Shown: in pieces, positions 8,726 through 54,142 of the stretch
How positions within the stretch are numbered: the first letter of the stretch is position 1
Layout: every line of letters begins with the position of its first letter
Position numbers and translations under genes: made by a program
Notes under the pieces: generated by a model
Told to the model about the DNA's origin: nothing
The model's database searches: none
The model's input: only the letters and a program-made list of their open reading frames with translations
From: Macrostomum lignano
Lineage: Eukaryota
NCBI GenBank assembly: GCA_002269645.1
Contig: NIVC01001493.1
Coordinates: forward strand, 215,053-279,052
Direction of reading: 5' to 3'
DNA length: 64,000 nucleotides

Positions 8726-8733
8726 CTGAGAGA

Positions 8734-8807
<74 letters not shown>

Positions 8808-8833
8808 CTGAGAGAGAGTGTGTGTGTGTGAGA

Positions 8834-8891
<58 letters not shown>

Positions 8892-14800: not shown

Positions 14801-16167
14801 CTCGCTAGACAGCTGGAAGCCTTCAGTGTACAAGGTGCAATTCCTGCTGCTGTGCACCGCCTGTGGCATCGCATGTACAGCCTCGGCCGTGTACCAACCC
14901 GTTGAGTCGTGGACCTACTTCGACTCGGTGTACTTCTGCTTTGTCGCCTTCTCGACCATTGGATTCGGCGATCTGGTGGTCAGCCAGCGGTCGGATTACG
15001 CATTTAGCACGCTGTACCGTGTGGGCAACTTCTGCTTTCTGATGCTGGGCTGCTGCTGCATCTATTCCTTCTTCAACGTGACCTCCCTGGTGCTGAGAAC
15101 CATGCTGGACAGGATGATCCGGAGGCTGGACTGTCGGTGCACCAACTGCCTGCGGCCCAAGGCCAAGATGAGGACGCTGCCGCCGCCGCCAAGGTTCAGG
15201 AGGAATGCCATCACGGAGAGAGACGTGGAGGAGCAAGTGAGCCCCAATAACCACTCTATCATCGCCCCAAAATCCACTCTATCATCGCCCCAATACCCAC
15301 TCTATCATCGCCCCAATACCCACTCTATCATCGCCCCAATACCAACTCTATCATTCCAATCACTCCAATACCCAATCAAGAATCGCCCCAACACCCAGTC
15401 AAGAATCACTCCAATACCCAGTCAAGAATCACTCCAATACCCAGTCAAAAATCAGTTCAATACCCAGTCAAGAATCAGTTCAATACCCAGTCAAGAATCA
15501 GTTCAATACCCAGTCATGAATCACTCCAATACCCAGTCAAGAATCGCCTCAATACAGTCAAGAATCGCCCCAACACCCAGTCAAGAATCACTCCAATACC
15601 CAGTCAAGAATCACCCCAACACCCAGTCAAGAATCACTCCAATACCCAGTCAAGAATCACCCCAACACCCAGTCAAGAATCGCCCCAATACCCACTCTAT
15701 CGCCCCAATACCCAGTCAAGAATCGCCTCAATACCCAGTCAAGAATCGCCCCAACACCCAGTCAAGAATCGCCCCAACACCCAGTCAAGAGTCGCCCCAA
15801 CACCCAGTCAAGAATCGCCCCAACACCCAGTCAAGAATCGCCCCAATACCCAGTCAAGAATCGCCCCAATACCCAGTCAAGAATCGCCCCGATACCCATC
15901 GCGCAGGCCAAAGACGCGGTTCACGAGGCCCGGAGGCTCAAGCGCCAGTCGTTCGACTCGAATTACGACTCGGACCGGTCGGACTTATCCGACGAGCTCA
16001 TCTGCATGCAGGACTTCCTGCGACCCAACAAGGTGCACCTCATCCAGCTGCAGAAACAGCTGTTCGAGACCGCCCAGCGGGCGCGAGAACCCGACGACGG
16101 TTTCAAAGGCGGCGTTGGTCCGCTGGCTGTGGTCAGTCAGAAGTTCGACGCTGAACCGGCGTACTGA
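6527..16167 (+). CDS. KCNK13: Two-pore-domain potassium channel, THIK subfamily (KCNK12/KCNK13-like), 455 aa; exons 6527-6881, 14485-15236, 15907-16167
   Basis: THIK-diagnostic DNARFLLLA in M1. P1 is WDYSGSFYFVGTVVSTIG|FGMTTP, split by a phase-1 intron. P2 is WTYFDSVYFCFVAFSTIGFGDLV. The C-tail ELICMQDFLRPNKVHLIQLQKQL...FKGGVGPLAVV matches the KCNK13 tail. All splice sites are GT-AG and in phase. KCNK12 versus KCNK13 orthology cannot be resolved from this. Confidence 0.93.
7066..8997. repeat. 1.9 kb compound (GA)n/(GT)n microsatellite in KCNK intron 1
   Basis: Directly visible. It is the source of the spurious SL/ER-repeat ORFs. Confidence 0.97.
9642..9890. repeat. (GAGAG)n purine-rich microsatellite
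   Basis: Directly visible. Confidence 0.9.
12663..13660. repeat. 25-bp G-rich minisatellite (GAGAGAGGGAGTGTGCGGGGAGGGT, ~22 copies to 13215) followed by a GA-rich tract
   Basis: Period 25 is visible from 12664, with occasional 24-bp variants. Confidence 0.95.
14170..14480. repeat. 22-bp minisatellite (CACTCCAGTCAGACACCAACCC) abutting the KCNK exon 2 acceptor
   Basis: About 14 tandem copies end at the CAG acceptor (14482-14484). Confidence 0.9.
15243..15900. repeat. Minisatellite filling KCNK intron 2 (CCCAGTCAAGAATCGCCCCAATA / CCACTCTATCATCGCCCCAATAC units)
   Basis: Tandem 23-bp-type units are visible between the donor at 15237 and the acceptor at 15906. Confidence 0.9.
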
Positions 16168-19692: not shown

Positions 19693-21285
19693 TCACCGGA
19701 ACACGTACACAATGAGCAGCACCAGACACAGAGCCGTGACCCCGGCCACCACAATAGCATCGCGCCGCTTCCTCAGGTTGATCTTGTGAATCAGATTGTT
19801 CATAGTCGGGAACCTGGTCGCTACGGCGTTCAAACGATTCTGCACGCCTCGAACGACTCGATTCTGACCGAGCAGATTCTCTTTAACAGACATGGCCAAG
19901 TCGATCTGCTGGTCGGCCAGTCTCTCGCTAGACTTCAGCGACTCATTCTCGGACAGAATCAGGCCGGTCCGACCTTGAGCTCGGAAAGCGTTGATGTCGG
20001 TTCGAACCGAGCCGAGAAGTTCCTCTCGCTCCCTGGCAGCTTCAATGTTGTGCCGGGTGCGTTGGAACTCTTTCTGATAGTCGGTCAGGATGTCCCGGTG
20101 CCGCTGCAGGGTGTGCAGAGAGCCGGCGCCGCTTTCCACGCACTCGGTCATGGCTGAGTGGCAGGAGGACAGCTCGCCTGTGGGGGGGCAGGTAACTTTG
20201 AAGGTCATTCATTTCAAAATCAATGGATTAGTAGATTGTTTTCCGATAACGAGACTCTCGTGAGCCTGGAATTCCTGCGTTTTAGAGGTTGATCCAGGTC
20301 TTAGGTATTCTCTTTTTTAGGGTTAAGGAGAATTTCGGAACCTCAAAAATCGAGAGAAATTTCCGAACCTCAAGGATCAACGGCAATTTCTGATCGTCAA
20401 GGATCAAGGGGAATTCCCAAACCTTAACTTATCAAGTATTAAGGATCAAGTAGTCAAGGATCAAGGGGAATTTCTGATTATTAAAGATCAACGGCAATTC
20501 CTGATCGTAAAGGATCAAGGGGAATTCCGAAAGTTTAAGGATCAATGGGAATTCCCGAACCGCACAGATCATGGGGATTTTCCGAACCGCAAAGATCAAG
20601 AGGAATTCCTGATCGTCGAGGTCCTAGGGGAATTCCTAAACCTCAAATATCAAGGGGAATTCCCGAACCTCAAAGATAAAGGGAAATTCCCGATTATCAA
20701 ATATCAAGGGGAATTCCCGAACCTCAAAGATTAAGGGGAATTCCCGATCATAAAAAAAATCAAAGGGAATTCCCGAACCTCAAAAGATTAATGGGAATTC
20801 CCAAACCTCAAAGATCAAGGGAATTCCCGAACCTCAAAGATCAAGGGGAATTCCTGATCATAAAAAATCAAAGGGAATTCCCGAACCTCAAAACCTCAAA
20901 AGATTAATGGGAATTCCCAAACCTCAAAGATCAAGGGAATTCCCGAACCTCAAAAATCAAGGGGAATTCCTGATCGTAAAGTTCCCGGGGGAATATCTGA
21001 TTTTCAAATACAAAGACAAATGCTTGCTAGTTTCCTATGCTACTAAAATTCCAATTTCTCACACCCGCAACTCTCACTTAACAGACGCTCCACCTCCGCG
21101 CTCATAGAGGCCAGCATGTGACCGCCAGTTTCGCTGCCGCCGCCGCCGCCGCCGCGACCCGAACTGGCGCCCAGCTTGGACAGGCTGACCAGCTTCTGGT
21201 CTAGCGAGTTCTCCAGCTGACGCGCCCGCCGTCGAACTTCTTCCCAACGCCTCGCCTGCTGCGCCGGGCCGCTGGTGGCTTCCAT
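19693..21285 (-). CDS. GOSR1: Golgi SNAP receptor complex member 1 (GOS-28), ~230 aa; exons 21285-21078 and 20177-19693
   Basis: The translation includes WEEVRRRARQLENSLDQKLVSLSKL, HTLQRHRDILTDYQKEF, REREELLGSVRTDI and RFPTMNNLIHKINLRKRRDAIVVAGVTALCLVLLIVYVFR (C-terminal TM anchor), all matching GOSR1. The intron is phase-1 GT-AG. An alternative in-frame ATG lies at 21291. Confidence 0.95.
20330..20995. repeat. Intronic minisatellite built on the palindrome GGGAATTCCC (TCAAGGGGAATTCCCGAACCTCAAAGA)
   Basis: About 16 GGG(A/G)AATTCC cores are visible in the GOSR1 intron. Confidence 0.9.
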
Positions 21286-22684: not shown

Positions 22685-22946
22685 CATACACATTGGCCAA
22701 TCCGGCCAACCAAGGTAAGTTGCAAAAATGCCCACCCCAAAGAATACAGATGTAGTACTAATTAGATGATGAGGCATTTAGCCCTTATAAGACAGTTATA
22801 GTTACTTTTGCCATTTACCCAAAATTGCATTAATTTTGCTTTAGGGTTTTTTCACATGTAAGTTGCATTTTTGGATAAAAACTGTCACATTTTTTGTTAA
22901 AACTAAGTTGCATGGCCAAGCAAATTTTGGAGGTTGCGCATATATG
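22685..22946 (-). mobile_element. hAT-type MITE with a 28S rRNA-derived core, decayed copy
   Basis: Colinear with the 31841-32137 copy. Right TIR GTTGCGCATATATG (22933-22946); left TIR degenerate. The 28S-like segment is at 22757-22820 on the minus strand. Confidence 0.85.
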
Positions 22947-24389: not shown

Positions 24390-24662
24390 CATACATGCAC
24401 AACCTCCAAAATTTGGTCGGCCGTGTGACTTAGTTTTAACAAAAATGCGACATAGTTTTTGGCCGAAAATGTGACTTACATGTAAAATGCAATGAATGCA
24501 ACTTTGGGTAAACGGCAGGAGTAACTATGACTGTCTTATAAAGCCAAAATGCCTCGTCAGCTACTTAGTACTACTACTTGGTGTTTTTCTGGTGGGCATT
24601 TTGTGACTTCCATAGTTGGCTGCCAAATTGGCCAGCCAGATCAGCCGACTTGGTGACTGTTG
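24390..24662 (+). mobile_element. hAT-type MITE with a 28S rRNA-derived core, right end decayed
   Basis: TIR CATACATGCACAAC at 24390. The 28S-like segment GGGTAAACGGCAGGAGTAACTATGACTGTCTTATAAAGCCAAAATGCCTCGTCAGCTACTTAGT is at 24506-24569. Confidence 0.85.
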
Positions 24663-26373: not shown

Positions 26374-26556
26374 CCTACATGCGCAACCCCCTGATTTGTG
26401 ATTTACAGTGGGTAGGTACACCGTGCGATCCATGCGACTCACTTTTTGATAGGTAGGGGCCTACGGTTTCCCTACCTATATAAAAAAGCAAAAATTAACG
26501 TAATTGTGGGTAAACGGCGGGAGTAACTATGACTGTATTGTAAAGGCTAAATGCCT
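26374..26556 (+). mobile_element. Truncated divergent member of the rRNA-core MITE family
   Basis: TIR-like CCTACATGCGCAAC at 26374, then an exact 27-nt 28S match GGGTAAACGGCGGGAGTAACTATGACT at 26508-26534, then AAATGCCT. The right end was not found. Confidence 0.75.
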
Positions 26557-27037: not shown

Positions 27038-30000
27038 GGGTGATTCTCATCGAGAGGTTTCGGAGGTTTTGAGGTTTTTCAGAGGTTTCATTTCGAACAA
27101 ATATTTTTGCACAAAATTTTTAATACCGTACAAAAATTGAAATCTTACTGAAATTTACTAATGAATACAAATTTTCTTTAGAAAATAGCTCGGAGGTTTT
27201 GGATTCTTTTTAATTTTGCTTCTGATAGGCACGCGCGGAAATTATTTAACTGTTTTTATGCGAAGTGGTAGGGTCCTTCTGACACATTTTATGCCATGCC
27301 ATTTTCATTGCTTCCTTTTCATTTCACAAGCGCAAAGTTGCGAATAGTCACAAGTGTGTGTTGTTCTATTTCAATGCATATTCGTAACTATCCTAATTTC
27401 TACTTGACCTGTCCATGTAATTAAAAACAGACACTATTTACCAATACGAATTTTAGATTGTTTTTGACTTGGTCAAAAAAGCTATCATTTTTTAAGCCAG
27501 ACTAACTAAATTAAGACTAACAAGACCAAGTCAGTATTTTTTTCATCAAGTCAGTATCAGTCGCTATTTAATATAGATTGTTAGTCTAACTAACTAAAGG
27601 CCCTAAGTATTTTACTAGGCATCTATAATGTAAAATATAATTATTTTTTCACTTATTTGATATTCTTTTTTATTTTACATCCATTATACTAAAACTTTTA
27701 TTTTTCTATTTTCTATTATTTACTATTTTTACATCATCATCCTAAATCCTAACACACAATGCACATAAGATAAAAATTTATTACCTAAGCCAAGCCTCTA
27801 ATACTAGTGAATAATTCTCTTCACAAAGCTTTAAAAATGGCAATTTTTTATTTTACTGCTTTACCTCTACCTATAAAATTGAAAGCTCTAATGATCTGAA
27901 ATTTTTATACTTTTAATTTTAAATAGGCCTATAATTTGTTAATAGCTTTATATTCAGTCATAATTTAAGCTGATATAGTCGAGTACAATTTCTATTCCCT
28001 GAAGATGACTGCTTGTGTCGAAACGCGTTGGCTATTATAATAATTTATTATATGTTGGTGTTGGCCTTCATTTCTCTATTATTTTTTAAACGAGCATCAC
28101 TACCAGCCCATTTCTATTACTCTTTTACATTAGTAACTTGCTTTAGTTTTTGTCTTTTTATGCAAATATTCAAAGTAAATAGTAGCTTGTACTTATGTAT
28201 GCCTAGTCATCACATTTTTATTCAATTTTTAATTTACTTTATAAGTAAATTGTTTTAATATTAAACAAATATACTCTCTTATCATCCACAGTAGTTATCA
28301 TGCCAATGAAATGCATGGTGCCAACCATGTTGGGGAGAAGGCTCTAAATCTTTAGATTTTCTTATGATGTTAAGTACTTACACTAGACCCATATACTAAA
28401 ATAATATCATTAGTCTAAAATCTTCTAGTCTAAAGTCTAAAATCAAATATCTTAGTCTAAAATAAGACTAACATTGTATTTCTCAATCATGCCATCTTTC
28501 CTGAACCCATCAAACTATGGAAATTTGTACAAAGCAATGGCCTACTAAAATACCATTGCTCATGATGATATGCTTCTAGAAGTCGCAGCGCAGTTGGCGC
28601 GATATGCTTTCGGCACGGCTCGACTTCAGCGTTTTTGCTCATCATTGCATCACTCGAGTCCCATTGTCCCATTTTTGGGCTTCCAGCATAAAAAATCAAC
28701 TGTTTCGATAGTCTCAATTGGAGGCCATGAAAGGCAATGTCAGACATGCTGGTGCCAATCTTGGAGAGGAATTTGCAGCCCACCTGATTGCCCTGTGGGA
28801 ATTGTGCCAAGGGAACTCACACCAATCATTTTTGTCCAGCAGCAGCAGCCGAGTGTTACTGATCCAAATGGAACTCACTACAACTGACATAATGCGACTG
28901 CCCGATTGCACTTTGCTGGCAGTAGCGGAAACCACGCACTGGAGAAGCATCGCCTATGTTCCTCACCCTACAATATTGAGGTCTCGATCACGTCGGTGGT
29001 CTTGACGATGTAGGATACAGGCTCAGAATGCAGGCAGGAGACCAGGCAAGCGGTAGTTCAGGCATGGTATTGGCAGCTGAAACAAAGCATGTTGAAATAA
29101 AAGGTATTGATTACTTTCATCTATAACTTTTTATAAACAATCAATTTTAAAAGTCAATATGATTTGACATAATGATTTTCCTATACATTTATTCTTGCAA
29201 TCTTTAAAGATGCCAATACATTTATATTGAAGAAATTATATTATTTTAAAATAAACAATGCCAAAAATGTGTCCAATGACTTTTTAGTTTTAACTCTAGT
29301 AAATATATTGGTATCAGCTATCTAGTTTATTGCTCAACATAGATTTTTAGCATCAAACAAAGGTGGTGCAATACATGTGCAAAGTCTTACTGTAAGCATT
29401 TTGTTTGTATAAGAACTAACTCAAACATGTTAGAGCTTTTGTCAGCAGTAACAGTTGTGCAACTAGTGTTATTTATGAGAGAAAAGCTAATAGCTTTCAG
29501 TGATTGAAATTAATTTTATGATTAAAAGTAAAATGTTCGGCTTTAAGTAATTAAAAGTAAAATGCATACTTGTAATTCCAGGCCCTTAGATATTTATAAA
29601 AAAAAACATTGAGACAACAATAATTCTGCTATTTACTTCTGTGAGGTAGTATGTCTTAACATAACATAACATCACATCAATGTCATAACATAATTCGAAT
29701 GCAAAATGGTATGCAGCAGCAGCAGCACTCAAAAGTAAAAACGGGAAACGGATGAAACAGCTGTCTATATGTTTTCAGTATATTTCAAGCAGCGCCTTCA
29801 AGTCGAATATTTTTTATTTTATTTATGCACCTTGAATGTAAATGCCAATGGCAACGATGACATTACCAGTGTGTTGTGTTGCGTAGTGTTTAAAAAACCA
29901 CTTTCAAGCATGAAAATAGTTGCCTAAGTTAAATAATTTCCGCGCGTGCCTATTAAAAGCAAAACTAAAAAGAATCCAAAACCTCCAAGCTATTTTCTAA

Positions 30001-30140
30001 AGAAAATTTGTATTCATTAGTAAATTTCAGTAAGATTTCAATTTTTTTACAGTATTAAAGTTTTTGTGCAAAAATATTTGTTCGAAATGAAACCTCTGAA
30101 AAACCTCAAAACCTCCGAAACCTCTCGATGAGAATCACCC
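27038..30140. mobile_element. 3.1 kb non-autonomous long-TIR DNA transposon (Mutator/MULE-like)
   Basis: ~214-bp TIRs at 27038-27251 and 29927-30140 (GGGTGATTCTCATCGAGAGGTTTCGGAGG...), with a perfect 9-bp TSD CCCCTCAGC at 27029-27037 and 30141-30149. No transposase was recognised inside. Confidence 0.85.
27997..28031 (+). ncRNA. Minimal (Penelope-type) hammerhead ribozyme-like motif
   Basis: CC-CTGAAGA-T-GAC-TGCTTGT-GTC-GAAAC-GC-GTT-GG shows the conserved core, a 3-bp stem II and a palindromic short stem III (AACGCGTT). Stem I has only 2 bp. Confidence 0.5.
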
Positions 30141-30466: not shown

Positions 30467-31840
30467 TCGAGCTACATTACTATTGAAAGCTACTATTAAA
30501 GAGCTTTAATTAATTAATAATTGTATGACGTGCTTAGCCGTGCTAGGACCTAGGCTGCTCGCCACACGATCAAGCTAGATCATGGGGATGACCATCTGAC
30601 AGGAGTGGGGGGCCGGCCAAGACTCACTGATTTATTTGTTAGACCTGAGGCCCGAAGGCTTCCCCACAAGGGGGTCGAAACCCATCAATATGGACTACCT
30701 AAAGAGAGTCATTTCGTCATCCACCAATCATATTACTCGTAGTTCCAACTTCAAGTGAATTAATGTGACAATCAAACATATTTATTACTTGGAATCCTAT
30801 GATCCCAGTCATTTTGTCATCTCGATTGATAAAACCTGTCGATCGATCGGTTCTGCTCAGCTTGCCGCAGCTTATAGAGTTTACACTAACTTGAATCCCA
30901 TCCCATACAGATTGATTGGTTGATGACGAAGTATCCAGCATAACTAAATATTTGGTCACTTTGCCATATTATTTTTCAAGCTACTTTGCTTCTAGTCACT
31001 TTGTGCGGACAGCAAATGGGGCTGCTTTACTTGCCATTGAAACTGCAACTGTCAGAAGCAAGTGTATTTTTAAGTCATTAAACTTAGGTAGTCAAATTAG
31101 CATTTAGGTGTATTACAAGCTACAATATTAATTTGTTTTTATGTATATTTTCTGTGAAATCGATTACCAAAATTTAAATGTGTTGAAATCAATAACTTAA
31201 AATATAGTCGTCTGCTTCTTCTTATAAAAAACTTCTAAAAAGGACTAAAATCTATATATAGCTATATATTAATTATTGTCGATCATTATACTCTTTTATG
31301 TAGCTAGTTATTAAAAATCTAAAAAAAACTTGACATTCAATAAATTTTTATCTGTCAAAAAATGTCATTAGCCATAGCCAATAGCCATGTACACATATGT
31401 AAAGATTTCTTCTGCTACATTTGAGTTTGTAACTTTTGTTTCCATTGATTTTAAATATATTAAAGTTAATATGAAAGAGAGTTGACACTTAATTGGTGCA
31501 AAATAATGTTATCTGGATCATTAGAATAAGAGATAGGGCCTAACTATATTTATTCACTTATATTGTGCTAGGGGTAACTTCTGTCCTTACAAATGATTCC
31601 CTAGCTGTCACTAAAGTTGTCAAAGGGCTAAACTCCTGTTTTTATAAATGTTGGTAGCTGCCACCAGGATTATCCTATTAATAAATTATTAGTTTATCAA
31701 TCTTAGAATAATCCGAGAAATGTTTCTTAGAATTGATCTGAGTATATATCTTAGTATTTAGTCTGAGTATTATCTGATTCCGGTAGCATTTACTGTATTT
31801 TTGGCCTGAGTGGTCTATTGGCTATACTGGTATATGTATT

Positions 31841-32137
31841 CATACATGCGCAACAGTCGGCCGAGTCGGCCGATCCGGCCGACCGATTTGGCGACCAACC
31901 AAGGAAGTCGCAAAAATGCCCACTCAAAAAACACCCTAGTAGTAGTACTAAGTAGCTGACGAAGCATTTTGGCTTAATAAGAGAGTCATAGTTACTCCTG
32001 CCGTTTACCCAAACTTGCGTTAATTTTGCTTTACGGTTTTTTTACATGCAAGTCGCATTTTTGGCCAAAAACTACGTCGCATTTTTGTTAAAACTAAGTC
32101 GCACGGCCGACCGAATTTTGGAGGTTGCGCATGTATG
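31841..32137 (-). mobile_element. Intact 297-bp hAT-type MITE with a 28S rRNA-derived core
   Basis: Perfect 14-bp TIRs CATACATGCGCAAC / GTTGCGCATGTATG and an 8-bp TSD TATGTATT (31833-31840, 32138-32145). The 28S-like segment is at 31947-32010 on the minus strand. Confidence 0.92.
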
Positions 32138-32620
32138 TATGTATTCCATGTACTTTGCAAGTCCTTGGGTGTTACCGAGATCAGAGGGTCATAGCCTCCA
32201 CTTATTCTTACATATATCACTTCAGATCTGCTTTGTATTCTCTCACTACTTAATACTGCTGCTTCTCAATAGTATGTACTGTATACACTTTAGTCTATTT
32301 CACTCTTATTTTGTAAAAGGAATTAACACAGAAAACACTTCTTCAATTCTTATTTTCTTGGAACTCTTACTATTCGCTATCAATTACTTATTGCGGAACT
32401 GCAATGCGCGAGGTTGTCTTCTCATTTGCTGAAATTGCTTCTATTTATACTAAAATTTGCTACAGTTTTAAATAAAAATTCATTAGTGCAAAATATTATA
32501 GAAAATATGAGTATTAAAACAAAATACATTTCTTAGTTTTGGCATGAATTCAAATTGACTAAATGGTGACTATTTTATAAAGAAATTGGCAGGGGCCCTG
32601 CACAATATTTATAGTAACTA

Positions 32621-33223
32621 GTTGTTTCGCCCATAAACCGTTTTGGCCATGGACATTTTGCCCCCAGATCATTTCGCCCATAGACCATTTTGGTCATGGA
32701 CTGTTTCGCCTCCAATTCGGACCAGGGTTGAAATGAACAAAGTCATGAGCTGAGAGTATGCGAGATGAGACAAAAGTACCAAAGAGCACTGACAACCAAC
32801 AATACAATTTATTATTGCTTCTTCCTTGCTTCTGTTGCATAACCAAAGCCAAAGATTGAAATGACTTACATGTACAGCAGTTTTTTACTTTACTTTACCC
32901 TTTCTCACCCTCTGTACAAATTGGCTATAATTATCACACTTTTAAAAGGAATGATTTTAAAAAACTCGTAATAATTCATAATCGTAATAAACAAAATTAC
33001 GATAATGCAATAACACAATTGTTGTGGCAACAATTCAGATCATATTTTATTACAAATTAAAACTAAAAATAAGCTTTGAAAAAAAATAACAATGTATGTA
33101 TGGCTACCATTGTGGCCAAAATGCCAATTGTCGAACTGGTCTATGTATATGCAAAACTGACAATGGGCAAAATGGTCTGGGGGCAAAATGTCCATGACCA
33201 AAACGGTTTGGGGGTGAAACAAC
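32621..33223. mobile_element. MITE-like element with ~60-bp modular TIRs (GTTGTTTCGCCC...CATTTTGCCCC)
   Basis: 32621-32680 is an imperfect reverse complement of 33163-33223. No TSD was seen. Confidence 0.6.
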
Positions 33224-38378: not shown

Positions 38379-41300
38379 ATGGCCGATGACACAGCTGACG
38401 GAGCTGTGGGTAGCAAAGATGGCAGACGGAACAGTTCTGATTGGCCAGCACCAGCCGGAGGGGTTGAGCTTGTCCGTATTGGCCAGCGCGATTCCCTGAC
38501 AGTATTTGATGGCAGCAGTGCTTTAAGCAGTGGCTCAGTAGCTGCCGCTAATGATAGTCCACTGCGTAGGAATCAGTACTTGGCTCAGACTAGTTCGAAT
38601 GGTCGAATGAAGAAAATTGATTTTGTGCTCACTTATCATCAGAAGCATGACGACTCTGTAGTCGCCAGCGCTGGCATGGAGTCCAGCGAGCAGCGCGAAA
38701 ATGAATTAAGAAATGCTCTCATTGATGCTCTACGCGTTGAAGGTGTCGATATTGAAGCGCCTAGTAGTAGTGGTAGCAAAGATCTAACCAATGGCGACGA
38801 TAGTAACTATGGAAATTATAACGGCGGAGATGATATTGTTGAGAATGAGAATGGTGGAGACTCAAGTGAAACTAAAATTAAATATCTATTGTTGCACGCC
38901 ACTTTTCCTCTGCTTGCTAGGTGAGTCAGATATAATTAGCATTCATACGGTTATTTTTGAGTTATTTTTAGTTGGATCTATGACTTATTGGCTTTATTCT
39001 TTCTGACAAAATGAATTGTCTTACCGAATCTCCTTTAGCTTCTTTCTAAGGAAATGTTCCATTCTTCAAGAATAATGATAAACCTTTTAATAACAATACC
39101 AAATCCTTTAAGTAAAATCTCAAATCCATAAAAAATAGCGTAAATCCATCAAGAGCAATGCCAGATCTATCAAGAATAATGTCAAATCCTTAAAGAATAT
39201 TGTAAAATCCTTAAGGAAGAATGTCAAATCCATCAAGTATAATGTCGAATCCATCAAGTATAATGTCGAATCCATCAAGTGTAATGTCGAATCCATCAAG
39301 AATGTAAAATCCATCAGGAATGTCAAATCCATCAAAAATGTCAAATCCATCAAGAATGTGAAATCCTTCAAGAAGAAAGTCAAATCCATCAAGAATGTCA
39401 AATCAGTTAAGAATAATGTTAAATCCATCAAATATAGTGGCCGATCCTAACCGGAGAAGCAGTGTAAAAATAATTTGAAATAGTTTCCAATTCACAGTGT
39501 CGTTTCTAAGTAGAGCGCAAATTCCTAGCTAAACAAGCTTATAAAAAAGTCAACCACAATAACGCAGATACGCCGAAGCCATCAAACTACAGATGCCGTT
39601 GCGCGATCAGAGCCTTGTCGATGATGCCAACGCGGCTGAAGGCACCCCAATAGATGTTGAGCAGGCTCAATTTGACTGCGCCCTGTGGCGCCTATTCCGA
39701 CACTCCAGCGACAATGCCGGCGACAGGAACGACCTGTTTACGGCGCCGTTTCAAAAAGATCGACCGGAAATGTTTGCCATAGGCGATCGCCCAGAGGATA
39801 GGGAAGATTTTTTTACTAGCGCTCAAAGATCATTACTGTTGCACACGGCTCTGGTGTCTCTGCCGGAGTTCAACCGGTGCGTCTCTACCGGAGCTATTAA
39901 AGAGGCCTATCCTCTGCACGACGGCAGTCACAAGCTGTCTGCGTCAGTGTCAAGCGCTCAGGTCACTGGCTGCGACAATGACAGGCAGGAGCTGAATTTG
40001 CTGTGGGTTTCGGCTAGGAATTGGTATCGATTCCAGCCGTTGATGCTCATTAGGCGGTACTTTGGCGAAAAGGTATGCTGTTGATATTATCGAATATTCA
40101 TCACTGGTTCACCTGTTTAATCACTAGTTCACCTATTTTATCACTGATTTACCTATTCAGTCACTAGTTCACCTATTTTATCACTGATTCGCCTATTCAG
40201 TCACTAGTTCACCTATTTTATCACTGATTCGCCTATTCAGTCACTAGTTCACCTATTTTATTACTGATTTACCTATTCAGTCACTAGTTCACCTATTTTA
40301 TTACAGATTCACCTATTCAGTCACTAGTTCACCTTTTTTATTACTGATTCACCTCATGTTCAGTCACATGTTCATTCATTTTGTCACTGATTCATCCATT
40401 CTCTCTGATTTAGCCATAAGTTTTCGCTCTCATCAAACATCTTGGAGGTTGGTCGCTAAAGGTCCTGAACCCTTGACCAATTCACTCATTCATTTGCTTT
40501 CAATTCACTTTTCGCCTAACTGTACTTTAGGTGAAGCTCAAATCCTCGTTGAATTCCACTATCATTATTTAGGTCGCCATGTACTTTGCTTGGCTAGGCG
40601 CCTACAATATGTGGCTGCTGCCAATCTCGGTGCTAGGCCTGGTGGCATTCATATACGGCATAGCAAGCGTCTGGTCAGATCAAACTGTCAATCAAATTTG
40701 TGACGATAAAACTGGAGCCGGAAATTTGTTAATGTGCCCTGTGTGCGATCAGGCCTGCGACTATTGGAGGCTGAATGAGAGCTGCATGTACTCCAGAATT
40801 GTGCACGTGTTTGACAATAGCGCCTCTGTGCTGTATGCCGGCCTGGTTTCACTGTGGGCCACCTGCTTTCTGGAGTTCTGGAAACGGCGTCAGTTTGTGC
40901 TGCAGTACCAGTGGGACGTGGCCACCTGCGAATTGGATGAGGTTGGGCTCTTTCGCTTGACTTTGTTGTACGCTTTTTGTCGCGCCATTCTTAGAAGTCC
41001 AAATTTTTGGCGCCAATTCTTAAGACCCCATTTGTTTTTGGCGCCATTCTTAGTAGGCCATGTGGTTTGTGGCGCCATTTTTAGGAGACCATGTTGTTTG
41101 TGGCGCCATCCTTAGTATACCATGTTGTTTGTGGCGCCATCCTTAGTATACCATGTTGTTTGTGGCGCCATCCTTAGTAGGCCATGTGGTTTGTGGCGCC
41201 ATTTTTAGGAGACCATGTGGTTTGTGGCGCCATCCTTAGTAGGCGATGTTTTTTGCGGCGCTATTCTTATTAACCAATCACACCCCAACAGCAACTGAGA

Positions 41301-44300
41301 CGAACAGCAAGCAGGCAAAGGTCTATGGCCCGAAGCAGCGCGAGAGGTGGGGAAAGCGACCCCAACCCCGAAAAAAGGAGGAGAAAAGGAGAGAACAGGA
41401 AAATAAAAGCAAGGAGGCAGCAAAAGTAAGCGAAGCCAGGCCACAAACGCCAAGGTAAAACGCCAAAGGGTCAAAAAAACGAGCGAGTAAGCAGTCAAGA
41501 GTCCAGGCAGGCAGCAACCCGCCTAGCTGCTGCCCGACGGCAGGCAAAGGACGCCTCACCAAAGAAATACCGAAAGACGCAGTCTGAACGCCAGTCGCCC
41601 ATGCCTAGGACAGAAAACAGGGACTGTTGCGACGCGTAGATTTGATTCTCGCGCAGATGTGTTGCTAGTGCGGAAGCGGGACAGATAAGCAGGCATTCGG
41701 AGGCCTGCGGCAGAAAAACTTCTAGTTGCCGCTCCTTGAATTGGTTTGTCTTTGACCTGTTGAGCATCAGCCGCAGACCACCGGGGCACGCTGATAGGCA
41801 GCTCCCGGGAAGAGCGTCCGCAGCGGTGGATGGTAAGAGCTCGCCGAGCCTAAGGACTTCCCACCAGGCCACCAGCAATGCTGCCTTGAAGGCGGCCAGC
41901 AGACGGGGCGGCAGCGAATGACGTAGCTCGGTGGAGCTGCAGAGCAGGCGGAGGTGGCTGGGCTTCAGCGGCGTCGCACGCCGAGGCAGCCGGCTCAGAA
42001 GACGCCGAGCCCTGCGACACACGAGAGCCAGGCGAGCGCTGCCCTTGGTCAGGTCTGGCGACGCGGAAGCCCTATGTAGGAAAGACACCGCGCTGAGGCT
42101 TGACTGCACACTGGAGTAGGACGCCGGTCCACGTTGTAACAGAAACGAGACAAATTGGCAGACATCAGACTCGGAGGCGGCGGTCGCGGGAATTCGACGC
42201 TGCCGGCAGAATTCGTTTAAGACTTGTAAGTGGCTCGCATAGGACTTCCTGGAACTAGGCGCTAGTGACAGGCGGCACAGAGCAGACACAGACACGGTGG
42301 AGCGGAGCGGAGCGCGGCTGCGACCTGTGAATGAAGAGCGGTGCGAGACACGGCAGAAATGGTGTGGGAAGCAAATTCGATAGGGCAAATGCATAAAGAG
42401 CCGTGAAGACGGCAGCAAAAATTAATGAGCTCTCTGCTCGAGCCCCCCATTCTAGAAGCGGAGTCGCTCAGCAGCTGCATCTGGCCAGGAAGGTGGAACG
42501 CCTGGAGCTGAATTCCCGACGTGAGGCACACGAGAGCAACGGTCTGATAAATGCGAATGAGCAGAGGATGCCGACAGGACAGCTTATTGACCATGCCGAC
42601 GGCAGCAGTGCTATCCGAGTAAATCACCACGCGGCTGTTCCTAAGCTGCTCGCGGAGGTGCAGGATGGTAAGCAGCTGAGCCAGCGCCTCCTTGTGGTTG
42701 ATGTGAAGGTCGCGGAACTTGCTCTCGAAGTCCTTCTCCCAGTTGAAGTACGTCCAGTCATTGAATTCGCTGCCAAAGACGATGCCAGCAGCACCCTCGC
42801 AACTGCTATCAGATTCGATGGCCACAAGTTGACGAAAACCAGGGCGAATGACCGTCGGCGGCAGAGAACTCACGACGCGCAGCCACCAGAAGAAGAGGTT
42901 GCGAAGCTCAGATGGCAGCCGGGTGTCCATTCTGTAGCTGAGGATGTCGAGGAGTGGGCGCAGGAAAGGATGCAAAAGCCTGTTGATCTGGCTGAGCCAG
43001 CACAACTTGCCGGCCAGTTTTTCGAGCTGCTTCAGCTTAACAACGTCACGTGACAGGCAATCGTTCAGCAGTTTCCGAATGTCGTCTTTCTTGTTCATTC
43101 GAAGTGACAGAGTGCCGTTCACAGTGCCAAAAAGGACGCCAAGAAACACAACGTGTTGAGCTGGAGCCACGGTCTTCTGCCAGTTGATGTCGAAGCCTAA
43201 GTTCTGCAGCAGATCAACGAGATAATTGAAGGCCTCCTGGGCCGCTTCTTCAGTATCAGCGGCTACTGCCCAGTCGTCCAAGTAGTTGACGGTAGCTGTG
43301 AAGCCAATGCTGAGCATGTGGCGCTTGATGCAGGCCGATAAGCGATGGAAAATTTCACATGACGCTCGAGCACCAAAGGGCAACCGAATGTCAACGAGCA
43401 CCGAGTCATCGCTGTCGGCAGCAAACCGCCAGCTGAGGCCCGTGAGCACCTGGTCGTCTGGGTGAATACCGACAGAACGATAGGCCTGTTTGAGGTCGAT
43501 TTTGCCGATAAACGAGCTTGGGCGAAGATAGCGGGTCAGGTCTTGGACAGAGGCGAAGCGCAGCCCCTTTCCCTGCTCATAGCTGTCGTTGACGGAGGAC
43601 CCCGAAGGTCTAGAAAGGTCATGAATGACCCAGACACTGCCGTCAGATTTTGAAATCGCCCCGATGGCGTTCACCATGACAGGACCATTGGCAAGCTGCA
43701 GGCGGCCGAGACGGAGCTCCTCGGCGAGCTGTTCATCAACCTGCTTGGCTTGGTCCAAGGCTGAGCGGTAGTTGGCGGAGCAGGCAAGAGAAGGCGGCGA
43801 CCTATTGACGAGCCGAAAGCCGTAACTAAGGCCACTGCGAAGAAAATTTTCGTCTTGGTCACCCAGAAGCAGCGGCTCCCAGGCGGCAAGGTTCATGTCG
43901 GACGACAGAGAGCGGCGCGGAGGAGAGAGCAGGGTTGGAGCTGGGCAATGAGCAGAGGGAGGCAAGATAAAAGGCGATGGCGAACGGGGGTTAAAAGCAG
44001 GGCGGCTATAAAAGATCTAGTTTTTGCTCCCTCCACAGCGTCGCCGCCGACGCTGGCCGGACGGTGCTGGTGCGCGGGTTGCGGCGGGCCGCAGTCGCGC
44101 AGCTTGCAGACGTGACGGTACCTACAGGAGGACCGCTGGCAGCCGGCAGGGGAGTTGTAGCTTAGGCAGATGGGAGCTTGCAACTGGTTGGATGCTGGCC
44201 TGCTCAGGGTGACTTTTAAGTTTCTTGGTGCGTTAAGGTGTCGGTGGTACAGCTGTGGAGGCTCGCGGCCCCATCGATGCGAATCCGAGTCTGCGATCAA

Positions 44301-47300
44301 CTTTCTGTAATCCTCATCGAATCCCACACGACACTTGGACTGTAGTTGGCGTCTAAGAGCTCGCCGATCTTCTGTGAGTACTCCAGATAGCCTTTTAGTT
44401 CGTCAACATTGACAGATCCATCCTCATTCATGTGAATTAGCGACCCATCATCAACTAGTCAAAGCAAAATCTTAGAGTTCCCTGCAATCCACTGGCCGAC
44501 AGAGATTTTCCCCAAGCTGGGTGGCTGCTTCTTAAAGACCAGGTTGCCGTTCTCCATGCAGGCTGTGAGGCTCTCATTAGGTTGATTTGAACTGGGCTTG
44601 ACAAAATCGCGAATCAGATAAGCCCTGCGAGGCTTTTTGTCACACTGGCTTCTGCCGGGATCTGTAAGAGCGCCGCCTAACAAAAACGCCTCATGCAAGC
44701 CAGCATTTTCTCTCCGCTCACCTTGTTGTGGAGGTTCCTGAGACCGGTGATTCTGCGACTGATTGAGCTCGCTTTGCAGTTGTGCGCGGCGCCGAGTCAG
44801 GGCTTCAATCTCCAGCTGCTCGACCTCATTCCTCAGAGCCGCCAGGTCGCTCGTCGCGCTCCCTGAAGCTCCGTGTCCACCCGTCAAATGTCCGCCGTCG
44901 ATGGTGTCTGAGTTGAGGCTTGCGTCGTGACTTTTTGCTGCAGCTGGATACTCAGACATAGCACGCAGGTGTCTGTGTAGACGCTCATAGAGTTGTTGTT
45001 TACGACCAGCTTGTGAGAGGCCTCGCTGAGCTAGCTCTTGTTTGAGCTGTTTAGTTGTAAAATTGCGTGCACTTTTCAAGATGTTAAAAATTTTGAGTTG
45101 CAAAGCCAAAGCGAGCGACGGGGCACAGAGGGCGGCTTGCATATAAATAAGCGGATGAGCAAACCCCTCCCCCACCCCACGGGGGGGGGGTAGAGAGGAC
45201 TGCGCACAAAGGCGGCACAATGTACAGCGCGAGAGGTGGATAGCTAACACTCCAGGCTAACATTTCACCCCAGGCTCACAAAAGAGCCTAAGAGAAATAG
45301 TGGCAATAGGCCATGTTGTTTGTGGCGCCTTTCTTAATAGTCCATTGTGTTAATGTTAATTGTGGCGCTATTCTTATGAGGTTATGTGGTTTTTGGCGCC
45401 ATTCTTATAGGAGGCCATGTTGTTTGTGGCTCCATTATAAAACCATGTTGTTTGTGGCGCCATTATTAGTAGGCTATGTTGTATGTGGCGCCATTCTTAG
45501 TATTATGTGTATTGTAGCGCCATTCTTAGTAGACCGTGTGATTTGTGACGCCATTTTTAGTAGGCCTTGGTTTGTGGCGCCATCCTTAGTAGGCCATGTT
45601 GTTTGTGGCGCCATCCTTAGTAGGCCATGTGGTTTGTGGCGCCATTCTTATAGGAGGCCATATCGTTTGTAGCGCTATTTTTAGGAGGCCATATCGTTTG
45701 TGGCGCTATTTTTAGGAGGCCATGGGGTTTGTGCCGCCATTCTTATAAAATCATGTGGTTTGTGGCGCCATTCTTATAAAATCATGTGGTTTGTGGCGCC
45801 ATTCTTATAAAATCATGTGGTTTGTGGCGCCATTCTTATAAATCATGTTTTGATGCCTGTTTCTAAGAATTGTCTGCTTCTCTTTCTAAGAAACTCTGAC
45901 GTACATATTTCGCTCTCGCCAGGTGCCTCGGCCTGAGTACACCAAATTGCACGCGCTGTTACGCGGGTCACGCTACTGCTTCAGCATGGTCACCGTCGTG
46001 TTCATGGTGGCCCTTGTGCTAGCCGTATTAGTCGGGGTGATCACCTATCGCGTTGCTATGCTAGTGGTGTTCTCCTCAATCTCCGGCCTTGGCGTGTTCA
46101 TGAGTAACCTGCGGCTAATCACTACTGGCACTGCAGCTTGTATCAACTTTGTCTGCATTCTGCTGCTCAACCAGCTGTACAAGCGTCTGGCCATGTGGCT
46201 GACTAAACTGGAGCGACCTCGTACGGAGACTGACTTTGAGGATTCCTATACTATCAAGATGTACTGCTTTCAGTTTGTTAACTATTATTCGTCACTGTTT
46301 TATATCGCTTTTCTCAAAGGCTCGTTTGCTGGTAGGCCCGGAGATTATGCCAGGTAAGACTTGAATGTGAGATTTTCATGATTTCTGGGTGAGATTTTCT
46401 TGAGATTCTCATGATTTCTAGGTGTGAGATTTTTTTGAGATTCTCATGAGTTCTGGTGTGAGATTTTCTTTGAGATTCTCATGAGTTCTCGGTGTGAGAT
46501 TTTATTGAGATTCTCATGAGTTCTGAGTGTGAGATTTTCTTGAGATTCTCAATTTCTGGGTGTGAGATTTTCATGAGTTTTGGCGTGAGATTTTCTTGAG
46601 ATTCTCATGAGTTCTGGAAATGAGATTTCTTGAGATAATGGAAAAAATTTAACGGGAAATTTTCACTGAAGATTTTGTGGGATTTTTGTGCTATTTTTTG
46701 ATACTTCGCATATCAGATATGATTGTAAGAACCCCTACGTACCTCATTAACCATGGCAACCACTTCAATCACCCAAAGGTTCCCAATGCTTGACGGTGTC
46801 CGTCTGGAAGAGTGCGACCCAGCTGGCTGCCAAGTGGAGCTGGTGGTCCAAATGCTCATCGTGTTCGTTGCTAAGCAACTGCTCAACTCCGCCACCGAGG
46901 TTGGTCCGCCTCTAATCCGTAGAATACTGGGCAGCCGCCGGCAGAAGCAGTGTGCAGCAGCCAATGCTGCGGACTCTAACAAGCCGCCCTGGCTGAAAGA
47001 CCACTGCCTGACACCTGTTGATCACCTGCAACTATTCGACGAATACCTGGAAATGGTGCTACAGTTCGGTTTTGTTGTGCTGTTTGTTGCCGCAATGCCG
47101 CTGGCCCCGCTGTTTGCCATGCTAAATAATGTCATTGAAATCCGGCTGGACGCTTGGAAAATGGTCGCCCTGATGCGTAGGCCGGTTGCTAGGCGGGCCA
47201 GAGACATTGGAGCCTGGTTCGGCATCCTTACCAGCATCAGCGCTCTGTCTGTAGTGACCAATGCTGTCATTGTTGGCTTCACATCCGAGCAGATACCCAA

Positions 47301-47685
47301 GCTGGTGTATCAGTTCACTGATGGCAGAGGCAGTCTGGATGGCTACATGAGCTGGCGTCTGTCTCTGTTTAATGTGTCCGATTTCGAGACCCAGTCTGTG
47401 CCTAGAATAGCTGACAGTGCAGCTGAGGTAAACGTGACTCAATGCCGCTATCGGGACTTCCGTTATCCGCCTGACAGCGCTAACAGGTACGAGTACAGCA
47501 CCGCTTACTGGCACGTGCTTGCCGCTAGGATGGCTTTTGTGCTGGTGTTTGAGCACTTTGTACTGGTGCTGAAGGCTCTGATTGATCTAGCTGTGCCAGA
47601 CAAGCCTGGCGTGGTTAAAGAGGAGATGAAGCGAGAACGGGAGCTGCTGAGGAAGGCGCTGTTTACGCATGCTAAAACTAATTGA
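38379..47685 (+). CDS. Anoctamin/TMEM16 family protein, 917 aa; exons 38379-38920, 39568-40072, 40573-40941, 45923-46353, 46779-47685
   Basis: Motifs include KKIDFVL, LLHATFPLLAR|YAEAIKLQMPL, IRRYFGEK|VAMYFAWLG, MCPVCDQACDYWRL, FLEFWKRRQ, PRPEY, FQFVNYYSSLFYIAF, RLEECDPAGC, FDEYLEMVLQFGF, NNVIEIRLDAWK and RDIGAW. The Ca2+-binding acidic residues are present. Exon lengths sum to 2754 nt (918 codons). The paralogue was not assigned. Confidence 0.95.
39150..39432. repeat. ~18-21 bp minisatellite (AATGTCAAATCCATCAAG) in anoctamin intron 1
   Basis: Directly visible. Confidence 0.85.
40098..40362. repeat. 40-bp higher-order minisatellite of alternating 20-mers (TCACTAGTTCACCTATTTTA / TCACTGATTCGCCTATTCAG)
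   Basis: Alternating units are visible in anoctamin intron 2. Confidence 0.9.
41495..42418 (-). pseudogene. Tyrosine recombinase ORF of the YR element, internally deleted
   Basis: SYASHLQVLNEFC, LLVAWWEVLRLGELL (catalytic R), LNRSKTNQ (K), ICPASAL and GDWRSDCVFRY (W...Y) are present. The H-x-x-R box is absent. Confidence 0.85.
42262..43965 (-). CDS. Reverse transcriptase/RNase H ORF (567 aa) of the Ngaro/DIRS element
   Basis: Motifs FLRSGLSYGFRL, VIHDLSRP, GKIDLKQAYRSVGI, LPFGARASCEIF, YLDDW and VFLGV, then RNase H IESDSS, INHKEALA, YSDSTAAV, HLPGQMQLLSDSASR. The frame is uninterrupted. Confidence 0.93.
   Translation of the reverse strand: MPPSAHCPAPTLLSPPRRSLSSDMNLAAWEPLLLGDQDENFLRSGLSYGFRLVNRSPPSLACSANYRSALDQAKQVDEQLAEELRLGRLQLANGPVMVNAIGAISKSDGSVWVIHDLSRPSGSSVNDSYEQGKGLRFASVQDLTRYLRPSSFIGKIDLKQAYRSVGIHPDDQVLTGLSWRFAADSDDSVLVDIRLPFGARASCEIFHRLSACIKRHMLSIGFTATVNYLDDWAVAADTEEAAQEAFNYLVDLLQNLGFDINWQKTVAPAQHVVFLGVLFGTVNGTLSLRMNKKDDIRKLLNDCLSRDVVKLKQLEKLAGKLCWLSQINRLLHPFLRPLLDILSYRMDTRLPSELRNLFFWWLRVVSSLPPTVIRPGFRQLVAIESDSSCEGAAGIVFGSEFNDWTYFNWEKDFESKFRDLHINHKEALAQLLTILHLREQLRNSRVVIYSDSTAAVGMVNKLSCRHPLLIRIYQTVALVCLTSGIQLQAFHLPGQMQLLSDSASRMGGSSRELINFCCRLHGSLCICPIEFASHTISAVSRTALHSQVAAALRSAPPCLCLLCAACH
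43893..45250 (-). pseudogene. Gag-like ORF1 with an N-terminal SAP-like domain and a C-terminal CCCH/CCHC-type zinc finger; one premature stop (44459-44461) and one frameshift (~44322)
   Basis: FTTKQLKQELAQRGLSQAGRKQQLYERL is SAP-like. The frame continues through the TGA into LVDDGSLIHMNEDG...LKGYLEYSQKIGELL, then shifts to FDEDYRKL...RWG and CLSYNSPAGCQRSSCRYRHVCKLRDCGPPQPAHQH. Confidence 0.8.
46366..46635. repeat. ~33-bp degenerate minisatellite (GAGATTCTCATGAGTTCTGGTGTGAGATTTTCTT) in anoctamin intron 4
   Basis: Directly visible. Confidence 0.85.
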
Positions 47686-48153: not shown

Positions 48154-48772
48154 GCCTTAATCTAATACCTGAGGTTTGCACGCTGTATTGCCACAATTTT
48201 AAACGGTATTTTCGTCTGTAATCGATAGTATTTAGATGTGTTTTAACATTATTTTACTAATTATTTGGTTGAAACTGTTTTACAATTTTTTTGTTTATCT
48301 TTACATGATGACGCAACATTCCTGAGCATCAGCTTCCGAACAAACTATATACATTTTTACCTGATATTTATTTGACATATTTATAACTTCTAAAATAACC
48401 AGAAATCTCAATTGTTATTATTTCTGTCTTGCGGTTTCCACAATCAATGAAATTTTCTTATAAATTATTGTTGTGGCCTAACTGTTAGCCGACTTTATTA
48501 TTTTCATATCGACCAAACTAAATATTATATTATACTATAATCTGTTGTGTGCACAAAACCAAATTGTTTATTCACTGTTTTGCCAGACTTTTAAACACAA
48601 TTTTTGTGTCATATTTAAATTATTGAGCCTTTTGTGTCTCAAATATATATAACGGTATACATTCACCAAACAGTTTTCTACTGCTACCTGTCGGCTTGTA
48701 TCTCTCTGTTGCTTCTTTCATAAAAATTGATAAATGTTGAAAAAATGAACAGTTAACTTTTAATGTTGCTGA

Positions 48773-49925
48773 GCCACTGCCGGCCTCCCAGATCCCCAGT
48801 TGCTGGGCCAGCCTCCCAGATCCTCAGTTGCTGGGCCAGCTTTCCAGATCCTCAGTTGCTGGGCCAGCCTTCCAGATCCCCAGTTGCTGGGCCAGCCTCC
48901 CAGATCCTCAGTTGCTGGGCCAGCTTCTCAGATCCTCAGTTGCTGGGCCAGCTTCCCAGATCCCCAGTTTCTGGGCCAGCTTCCCAGATCCCCAGTTGCT
49001 GGGCCAGCCTCCCAGATCCTCAGTTGCTGGGCCAGCTTCCCAGATCCTCAGTTGCTGGGCCAGCCTCCCAGATCCCCAGTTGCTGGGCCAGGCCAGCCTC
49101 CCAGATCCTCAGTTTCTGGGCCAGCTTCCCAGATCCCCAGTTGCTGGGCCAGCCTCCCAGATCCCCAGTTGCTGGGGCAGCCTCCCGGATCCTCAGTTGC
49201 TGGGCCAGCCTCCCAGATCCTCAGTTGCTGGGCCAGCTTCCCAGATCCCCAGTTGCTGGGCCAGGCCAGCCTCCCAGATCCCCAGTTTCTGGGCCAGCTT
49301 CCCAGATCCCCAGTTGCTGGGCCAGCCTCCCAGATCCCCAGTTGCTGGGGCAGCCTCCCGGATCCTCAGTTGCTGGGCCAGCCTCCCAGATCCCCAGTTT
49401 CTGGGCCAGCCTCCCAGATCCCCAGTTTCTGGGCCAGCCTCCCAGATCCCCAGTTGCTGGGCCAGCTTCCCAGATCCCCAGTTGCTGGGCCATCCTCCCA
49501 GATCCCCAGTTGCTGGGCCAGCTTCCCAGATCCCCAGTTGCTGGGCCAGCTTCCCAGATCCCCAGTTGCTGGGCCAGCCTCCCAGATCCCCAGTTTCTGG
49601 GCCAGCCTCCCAGATCCTCAGTTGCTGGGCCAGCCTCCCAGATCCTCAGTTGCTGGGCCAGCTTCCCAGATCCTCAGTTGCCAGGCCAGCCTCCCAGATC
49701 CCCAGTTGCTGGGCCAGGCCAGCCTCCCAGATCCCCAGTTTCTGGGCCAGCTTCCCAGATCCTCAGTTGCTGGGCCAGCCTCCCAGATCCCCAGTTGCTG
49801 GGGCAGCCTCCCGGATCCTCAGTTGCTGGGCCAGCCTCCCAGATCCCCAGTTTCTGTGCCAGTTTCCCAGATCCCCAGTTTCTGGGCCAGTTTCCCAGAT
49901 CCCCATTTGCTTTTCCAGCCTCCCA
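48773..49925. repeat. 28-bp minisatellite (GGGCCAGCCTCCCAGATCCCCAGTTGCT), ~40 copies, directly upstream of the RBM5/10 ATG
   Basis: Directly visible. It is the source of three spurious overlapping ORFs. Confidence 0.95.
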
Positions 49926-49976
49926 AAGTGTCAGCTGCTCAGTTAATTTTAATTGCATTGCATGCAACACCGCAGT

Positions 49977-53268: not shown

Positions 53269-54142
53269 GTAATTCGAATTTTTAAAGAGGCCGAAGTTTC
53301 GCCATTCAAATTAATTTATGCTATCTTTACCCAGTGGTTAGAAAAATTGGGGCGTACCCTCTAGGCCGGCGCCCCGGCGGCCCTCAAGGGTACGCCCCAT
53401 CCCGCAAGATAAAAGTTTGTAGGTTTTCTTCTTTGTACGTATGAAATATTTTTGTGAGGAAATTATGTAAAGAGCAGAATTTTTAAAGTTGATTTTTTTA
53501 GTTTCGGGTGTTTTTGTGCTCGAACCTGACAGTACGCCTTTCAGTACGTGCAGTGGACAGTGGGGCGAACTATTGATATCCTTATTAATTATTTTCTTGT
53601 ATAATGAGCTCATTATTTATTTGCATTGACCAATCCTCATACTACAGCTAACTTGAACTTTTAACCCTTTGAGCAGCCATCTCTTTGAAAAATTGCTGCA
53701 AGCTCCAAAGTGGGGTATAGGCGACTCGTGCAAATTTTTCTGAGTTTCATACACTTCAGAAATTGGATGTGAACGCAAAAGTGTGCGTTTTAGCCTACCT
53801 ACTTATAAGTAATACCTTTTGATCTTCGAAATCAACGCAACAAAAAATATATTTTTTAATACTCCACTACTTAAGCACTAGCGCATGTACAATGTTGCTT
53901 GTATTCTTAAGTTTTCATTTAGATGAGTCCGATTTGGTGGTCAATTCAGGATTTTTAAAGTAGTGGGGGCAGATTTGCCCAAATTTTTGTTTTGGTCTAA
54001 AAAGCCAAAGTAAGCTCAAAATTTACCCCCCTTATATGCAAGTCCAGCCATGGCAAAGGGGGCGGCCGCCGGGTCTACTACATCTACGAGTACATTTGAC
54101 CGCCACAATTTGATCGCCGTTCTATTCAAGGTGAAATAGGGC

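Follow-up and report, generated by a model that had tools for sequence, protein, structure and literature searches.

The closest DNA-transposon precedent for the elements described here is Pokey (Pokey/mPok; piggyBac, Daphnia), a cut-and-paste family with MITE derivatives that carries rDNA-derived sequence near its 5' end and is also found outside the rDNA (PMC4912750; PMC10946416). Its cargo, however, consists of IGS/ITS repeats and not 28S coding sequence, and it makes TTAA duplications at a specific 28S site; the family reported here carries a piece of 28S coding sequence and lies between 8-bp TSDs at unrelated sites (TATGTATT and GTTGGGTT). Mammalian SINE28 is likewise a dispersed repeat family with a 28S rRNA-derived segment (PMC4994717, PMC5786205) but, as a retroposon, lacks TIRs, whereas TIRs and TSDs delimit the family here, which has therefore moved at the DNA level. 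Table 2 of a 2024 review (PMC10946416), which also describes the modular reshuffling of transposable elements, has entries for SINE3-type SINEs and the Cassandra and Ajax TRIMs (5S promoters), for mammalian SINE28 (28S), and for Pokey and mPok (rDNA IGS repeats); elsewhere, some R2 elements have acquired a 28S-derived 3' UTR (PMC5035012), and Dada transposons target small RNA genes (PMC3706591). An earlier, sequence-only reading of the present DNA knew of no TIR/TSD family with 28S cargo, which appears roughly right, the 2024 review (PMC10946416) containing none. Our searches of the literature for TIR elements with 28S cargo led only to Pokey, SINE28, R2 with its 28S-derived 3' UTR and the 2024 review; none described a family that has both TIRs and TSDs and carries a piece of 28S coding sequence, and the TIR string CATACATGCGCAAC gave no relevant paper.

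A host gene fragment inside a non-autonomous TIR element is likewise seen in transduplicating DNA transposons such as Pack-MULEs and in the filler DNA of internally deleted Ac/Ds and P elements, where the mechanism of capture is thought to be template switching during gap repair. Such captures usually involve protein-coding genes, often in one copy only; here, in contrast, the cargo is rRNA coding sequence, common to at least three subfamilies and fixed in its subterminal position.

The window (the whole 64-kb stretch of DNA analysed) contains five elements, labelled E1 to E5 with the rRNA-like segment set as sense, which constitute a single family of cut-and-paste DNA transposons, non-autonomous and delimited by TIRs and TSDs:

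22685-22946, minus strand: E1, an older, decayed copy of the same subfamily as E2 and E4; left TIR (canonical orientation) at 22933-22946, one mismatch
24390-24662, plus strand: E2, same subfamily as E1 and E4; TIR at 24390-24403, one mismatch
26374-26556, plus strand: E3, a truncated copy from a diverged subfamily; one TIR, at 26374-26387, one mismatch
31841-32137, minus strand: E4, complete, 297 bp, non-autonomous; TIRs at 31841-31854 and 32124-32137
31833-31840 and 32138-32145: TSD of E4, TATGTATT, by direct reading
50730-52724, plus strand: E5, complete, 1995 bp, non-autonomous; TIRs at 50730-50743 and 52711-52724
50722-50729 and 52725-52732: TSD of E5, GTTGGGTT
52208-52528, plus strand: tandem array of E5, 15.7 copies of a 21-bp unit, CTTTTTGCGACTTACCTAATC, before the right arm

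That five elements share a TIR, and that two of them are complete with 8-bp TSDs, had both been claimed from the letters alone, and both claims stand. The TIR 14-mer CATACATGCGCAAC has seven matches in the window at up to two mismatches, against 0.29 expected and with 0 of 100 shuffles reaching seven, and these coincide exactly with the ends of E1-E5; E4 and E5, read directly, have perfect 14-bp TIRs at both ends, with TSDs of 8 bp in each (2/2 complete copies). The other three retain a single recognisable TIR each: the far end of E1 and the right end of E2 are decayed, with no TSD identifiable by direct reading of either copy, and E3 is truncated just past its 28S-like core and is without a right end. 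Relaxing the TIR search of the window to three mismatches brought in background-level extras only and no right end for E3, and BLAST of the elements against the window found no sixth copy, which leaves five in 64 kb.

Three subfamilies are represented: the MITEs E1, E2 and E4 (262-297 bp), the 2-kb E5, and the diverged, truncated E3. At 1995 bp, E5 contains short ORFs only. One of these, of 58 aa, was considered as what might be left of a transposase, but a set of 1.84 billion representative proteins includes no homologue of it. A 35-bp tandem array (50547-50730; 5.3 copies, 95% matches) runs up to E5, its last unit being the insertion point of the element; excising E5 together with one copy of the TSD restores the 35-bp repeat unit, which resumes past E5's TSD.

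Multiple alignment gives a common internal order of left TIR, short spacer with GGTCGGCCG, two or three direct units of ~24 nt, each with (A/G)TGCGAC(T/G)TA, and then the 28S-like module; in the MITEs a junction then leads to a right arm with another TTTTTGCGACTTCC and three CGGCCG palindromes. The right TIR comes last. The motif TGCGACTTA has 18 matches in the window against 0.4 expected by chance, 17 of them within elements. We regard the family's direct subterminal TGCGACTT repeats and palindromic CGGCCG motifs as candidate transposase-binding sites; the 21-bp array of E5, an element that also has a CT-rich/GA-rich low-complexity inverted region, is an expansion of the subterminal TGCGACTTA motif, a candidate site of the same kind. 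The arms of the MITEs (~260-300 bp) align to the left ~190 bp and right ~100 bp of an E5-like element, indicating that the MITEs are internal-deletion derivatives of something like E5.

When folded, E4 pairs its two ends with each other (z = -5.2), a common trait of MITEs. The copies differ in age: CpG observed/expected is 1.42 in E4, 0.57 in E2 and 0.24 in E1, with 0.71 for the whole window. The low value for E1 agrees with its CG-to-TG/CA changes, several G-to-A and C-to-T changes lie inside its core, and decay in old copies, as exemplified by E1, is the same in the 28S segment as elsewhere in the element. E3 also has a near-perfect hairpin (GATAGGTAGGGGCCTACGGTTTCCCTACCTAT; 26444-26484) that is absent from the other copies; its Rfam matches are miRNA-like but weak (E 1.6-2.6), and we treated them as chance.

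Judged by its sequence, the internal module is derived from 28S. When 15 real 28S genes, taken from metagenome contigs as references, were compared with the window by BLAST, they matched five places only, all within E1-E5 (64-82 nt, 77-87% identity, E 6e-16 to 3e-7):

22757-22836: 28S-like segment of E1, from BLAST to real 28S
24506-24569: 28S-like segment of E2, from BLAST to real 28S
26492-26556: 28S-like segment of E3, with an exact 27-nt match at 26508-26534
31947-32026, minus strand: 28S-derived segment of E4; BLAST match of 81 nt, 82.7% identity, E 5.8e-16
50825-50893, plus strand: 28S-derived segment of E5; BLAST match of 66 nt, 84.8% identity, E 8.7e-14

The segment had been described beforehand as 28S-like, placed at a common internal position and identical to 28S over 27 nt in one copy; each of these points is upheld. 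BLAST and alignment agree in placing the 28S-like core 80-121 nt inside the left TIR in all five copies, always sense relative to that TIR, with both orientations relative to the plus strand represented; the 27-nt match in E3 is correct in a position-by-position comparison; and for the five copies in the window the E-values reach 6e-16. In addition, the core 25-mer GGTAAACGGCGGGAGTAACTATGAC has four matches in the window at up to three mismatches, against 0 expected, and the segments of E4 and E5 are enclosed by perfect TIRs and TSDs. Rfam LSU_rRNA_eukarya (RF02543) matches 50780-50893 in E5 at model positions 2214-2313 (model consensus at the matched region, GGGUAAACGGCGGGAGUAACUAUGACUCUCUUAAGGUAGCCAAAUGCCUCGUCAUCUAAUUAGUGACGCG) with 20 bits and E 0.0038 for a 161-nt search, a score that falls under gathering because the fragment is short. 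In an Rfam scan of the whole window (E up to 1) the LSU fragments went unreported, and a local scan of E3 gave no LSU match, only a weak one to UnaL2 (E 1.7), which we treated as chance. The extent of the module corresponds approximately to model positions 2230-2313, the H69-H71 region, which is the identity that had been proposed for it. The BLAST match to 28S runs 16 nt upstream of GGGTAAACGG in E1, E3 and E4, and the block common to E3 and the other copies starts in this upstream extension (AAATT..CAAG, ~16-20 nt); considered alone, the extension of 28S homology upstream of GGGTAAACGG is not significant (p 0.03-0.96, by shuffling).

Comparing each copy with 28S position by position shows the module to be unevenly conserved. 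Identity to 28S is 93% over the 27 nt of its 5' block, where the family consensus agrees at 26/27, and 75-82% over the 26 nt of its 3' block. It is lowest, at 48%, over the central 13 nt, which comprise the 3' strand of H69 and CTTAAGGTAGC, the sequence in which the sites of R2, I-PpoI and Pokey lie. The AGGTA of 28S is matched in 0/5 copies, the family consensus there being TAAAG, and the intact cleavage region CTCTCTTAAGGTAGC was found in none of the five. Hence, of the proposal that the family had captured the rDNA region targeted by R2, I-PpoI and Pokey, the origin from 28S H69-H71 holds and the preservation of the cleavage site itself does not. No compensatory changes keeping the H69 stem were seen across copies, and since the stem is not maintained there is no sign of selection on RNA structure. 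The derived differences from 28S that the copies share argue that the module was captured once and then inherited, neither captured repeatedly nor renewed from rDNA by conversion. As the cause of the conserved 5' block, too, gene conversion from rDNA was rejected, given that the adjacent central region keeps its shared non-28S changes. We likewise find no rDNA-specific targeting: the TSDs of E4 and E5 differ, their flanks are not rDNA, the window is without a 28S gene, 28S similarity is confined to element interiors, and 0/5 copies lie in rDNA.

The superfamily had been given as hAT, and membership is plausible on the strength of the 8-bp TSD and short TIR. hAT elements typically combine an 8-bp TSD with a short TIR whose first bases are CA, and hAT MITEs resemble the family here in these two features and also in their subterminal short repeats and size of ~260-300 bp; TSDs of ~8 bp are, however, also made by P, Zisupton, Novosib and some Mutator and Merlin elements. 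The hAT consensus is a TIR of 5'-YARNG with a weak TSD consensus of nTnnnnAn. Against it, the TIR here starts CATAC, its third base being T and not a purine; the TSDs TATGTATT and GTTGGGTT do not fit nTnnnnAn either, a weak test at n=2; and no hAT transposase is linked to the family. No transposase ORF with the family's TIRs was found in the window. The only transposase-like ORF there (58026-60053, minus strand) is intact, encodes 675 aa without a Pfam hit, and has its best homologues (39-52% identity) in Macrostomum lignano and Hydra under the names DUF4218 or transposase-domain proteins. This ORF, which has no relation to the MITE family, probably encodes a CACTA/tnp2-like transposase that was active recently.

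Besides these elements, the window, which is of animal origin, holds other repeats and several genes. An inverted-repeat pair between E3 and E4 (27038-27251 and 29927-30140; 214 nt, 96% complementary, 2.7 kb apart) resembles an independent element that ends in long TIRs, and has no ORF of at least 150 aa inside it; just downstream of E4 lies a small inverted-repeat element (32621-32692 and 33152-33223) with 72-nt arms, 86% complementary, and internal TTTCGCCCATAGACC repeats. Anoctamin exons occupy 40579-41115 and 46753-47685 (best named match for the anoctamin exon in Macrostomum lignano, 58% identity), and a DIRS-like retroelement (41495-43965, minus strand), lies between the two and so has probably inserted into an intron; it consists of an RVT_1 ORF (E 2e-11) and, after it, one with a phage-integrase N-terminal SAM-like domain. 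Long low-complexity or tandem-repeat tracts (6993-9128, 12654-13724, 48763-50445, 54016-55130 and 60968-61805) give rise, in more than one frame, to long ORFs that are spurious (SL/TH-rich, PxxSLS-rich, or of 16-aa units, PARQFARQTICPPDNL), some of them falling between two-pore potassium channel exons at 6260-6961 and 14493-16154; a tandem array with a 27-bp period (20300-21010, ~14 or more copies) lies just downstream of a V-SNARE gene (19693-20208).

Searches beyond the window returned no further members of the family. The 60 kb of Macrostomum lignano sampled gave low-complexity matches only, with no TIR and no core, and viral and prokaryotic genome contigs scanned for the core, or for the TIR plus 10 nt, gave no matches. 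A scan of JGI metagenomes with the family's variant core GGTAAACGGCAGGAGTAACTATGAC returned 42 loci, all of them real 28S genes or rDNA junctions and none a copy of the family; the 15 28S references used above come from among them. GGCAGG is therefore a natural 28S variant and not a family marker. Four metagenome loci (L034, L013, L025 and L031) hold a fragment of the same 28S region in a non-rDNA context, so that pieces of this region occur outside rDNA in other eukaryotes too: the fragment in L034 (VSKX01070129.1, 2919-3050) is ~130 nt long, starts at GCGGGTAAACGG, shows CpG decay and adjoins an inverted repeat with 38-nt arms, without the TIR CATACATGCGCAAC, and those of L013 and L025 end at or near rDNA-element insertion sites. 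Other metagenome 28S genes are interrupted just past CTCT(C/T)TTAAG(G) (L001, L003, L005, L011, L016 and L038) or have a short duplication, TCTCTTATGACTCTCTTAAGGG (L026 and L041), presumably in all cases through insertions of R2-like or other rDNA-specific elements.

The explanation we favour, and hold with moderate confidence, is that a 28S fragment was captured a single time and has since been carried as passive cargo in the cis-required subterminal region of a cut-and-paste family. The ancestor of the family would have picked up, once, a ~65-80-nt piece of a 28S rRNA gene spanning GGGTAAACGG to TAATTAGTG(AC), possibly with ~20 nt more upstream; the likely route would be template switching or filler-DNA synthesis in gap repair after excision, or transduplication, with rDNA or rRNA offering an abundant template, and the piece would have landed at a distance of ~100 nt from the left end. 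The corresponding subterminal region of hAT and P elements is needed in cis, and a 28S piece lying there would therefore be kept by every deletion derivative that could still be mobilised. The route of capture, like the superfamily and the passive status of the segment, is something that we infer, the first two because no autonomous element or transposase was found. Acquisition of rDNA modules by transposable elements has precedent, mostly without benefit, as in the IGS/ITS repeats of Pokey (PMC4912750) and the cases reviewed in 2024 (PMC10946416).

Two rival readings concern the origin and the role of the 28S segment. That its resemblance to 28S is chance, or that ordinary dispersed rDNA pseudogene fragments merely happen to lie near TIR-like sequences, might be argued from the shortness of the fragment, from an Rfam score under gathering and from the silence of the whole-window Rfam scan; yet the BLAST E-value against real 28S genes reaches 6e-16, the five matches all fall inside elements, distance from the TIR and orientation are the same in 5/5 copies, and perfect TIRs and TSDs enclose the segment in two. 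The counts of TIR and core together with the 28S BLAST and the alignment rule this origin out, and we give it practically no credence. Scarcely more probable is a role that had been suggested for the copies, that of decoys or landing pads, scattered through the DNA, for elements or nucleases specific to rDNA (R2, Pokey-like elements, I-PpoI-like homing endonucleases). The segment does derive from the 28S region containing those sites, and metagenome 28S genes do show insertions at the same site, but conservation within the module is poorest precisely in the 13 nt that surround the cleavage sites (48% identity to 28S), with AGGTA in 0/5 copies and CTCTCTTAAGGTAGC in none, and no insertion is present at the homologous position in any of the five. 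The absence of an intact cleavage site from every copy makes this suggestion very hard to sustain.

A more substantial challenge to passive cargo is that the 28S block, especially GGGTAAACGGC(A/G)GGAGTAACTATGACT, has been co-opted as a cis-acting element and is kept by selection on mobility, in which case it could serve as a transposase- or host-factor-binding site, or as part of the promoter or 5' UTR of an autonomous element. Between subfamilies the TIR is 93-100% identical and the 27-nt 5' block 89-96% (13-14/14 and 24-26/27 positions, respectively, across the three), and the subterminal DNA in between is much more diverged, at 48-61% identity with gaps counted; E3 has only the TIR and the module in common with the other copies, the module alone being detectable by BLAST, for which the TIR is too short. 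Conservation of the block to the same degree as the TIR is the pattern that a selected cis element would show, and the module lies within ~200 bp of the end, the zone in which the cis requirements of Ac and P elements are usually found. The comparison, however, covers three lineages and five copies, with a block chosen post hoc and subterminal DNA that is rich in repeats and hard to align. When gaps are left out, the identity of this DNA is ~68% for E4 vs E3 and ~86% for E4 vs E5, the latter not much lower than the block's 93%; and it is TGCGACTT, not the 28S block, that recurs subterminally in the way expected of a transposase-binding site. On so thin a basis we keep passive cargo as the main explanation and the cis module, which we think unlikely but worth taking seriously, as its main rival. 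A bolder version, that the lineage has domesticated a 27-nt piece of 28S H69 as an essential cis module, would explain conservation like that of a TIR despite the lost R2/I-PpoI site, and might work by recruiting a host rRNA- or rDNA-binding factor or by making small-RNA silencing costly; we consider it improbable. More doubtful again is that the rRNA-like segment matters at the RNA level, where read-through or hairpin transcripts of the element could yield 28S-matching small RNAs, or the segment could shield the element from small-RNA silencing, as a host could not safely target its own rRNA. The long end-paired fold (z = -5.2) and the occurrence of both orientations relative to the plus strand are in keeping with this, but such folds are found in MITEs generally, the hairpin here is built by the TIR and subterminal repeats and not by the 28S segment, and that segment makes up ~25% of the MITE and has no antisense pairing partner inside the element.

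A TIR/TSD-bounded family with 28S coding sequence would add a DNA-transposon example to the transposable elements that borrow from rDNA. Such copies will be mis-annotated as rRNA fragments and can contaminate repeat libraries, and when RNA-seq or small-RNA data are mapped they will draw reads that stem from rRNA. One feature deserves pursuit across the whole genome, namely that the 27-nt block is conserved to the same degree as the TIR: were the block required for mobility, it would be a rare co-option of rRNA sequence by a class II element; were it not, the family would represent a tidy case of a single capture that became fixed because it lay in the subterminal region required in cis.
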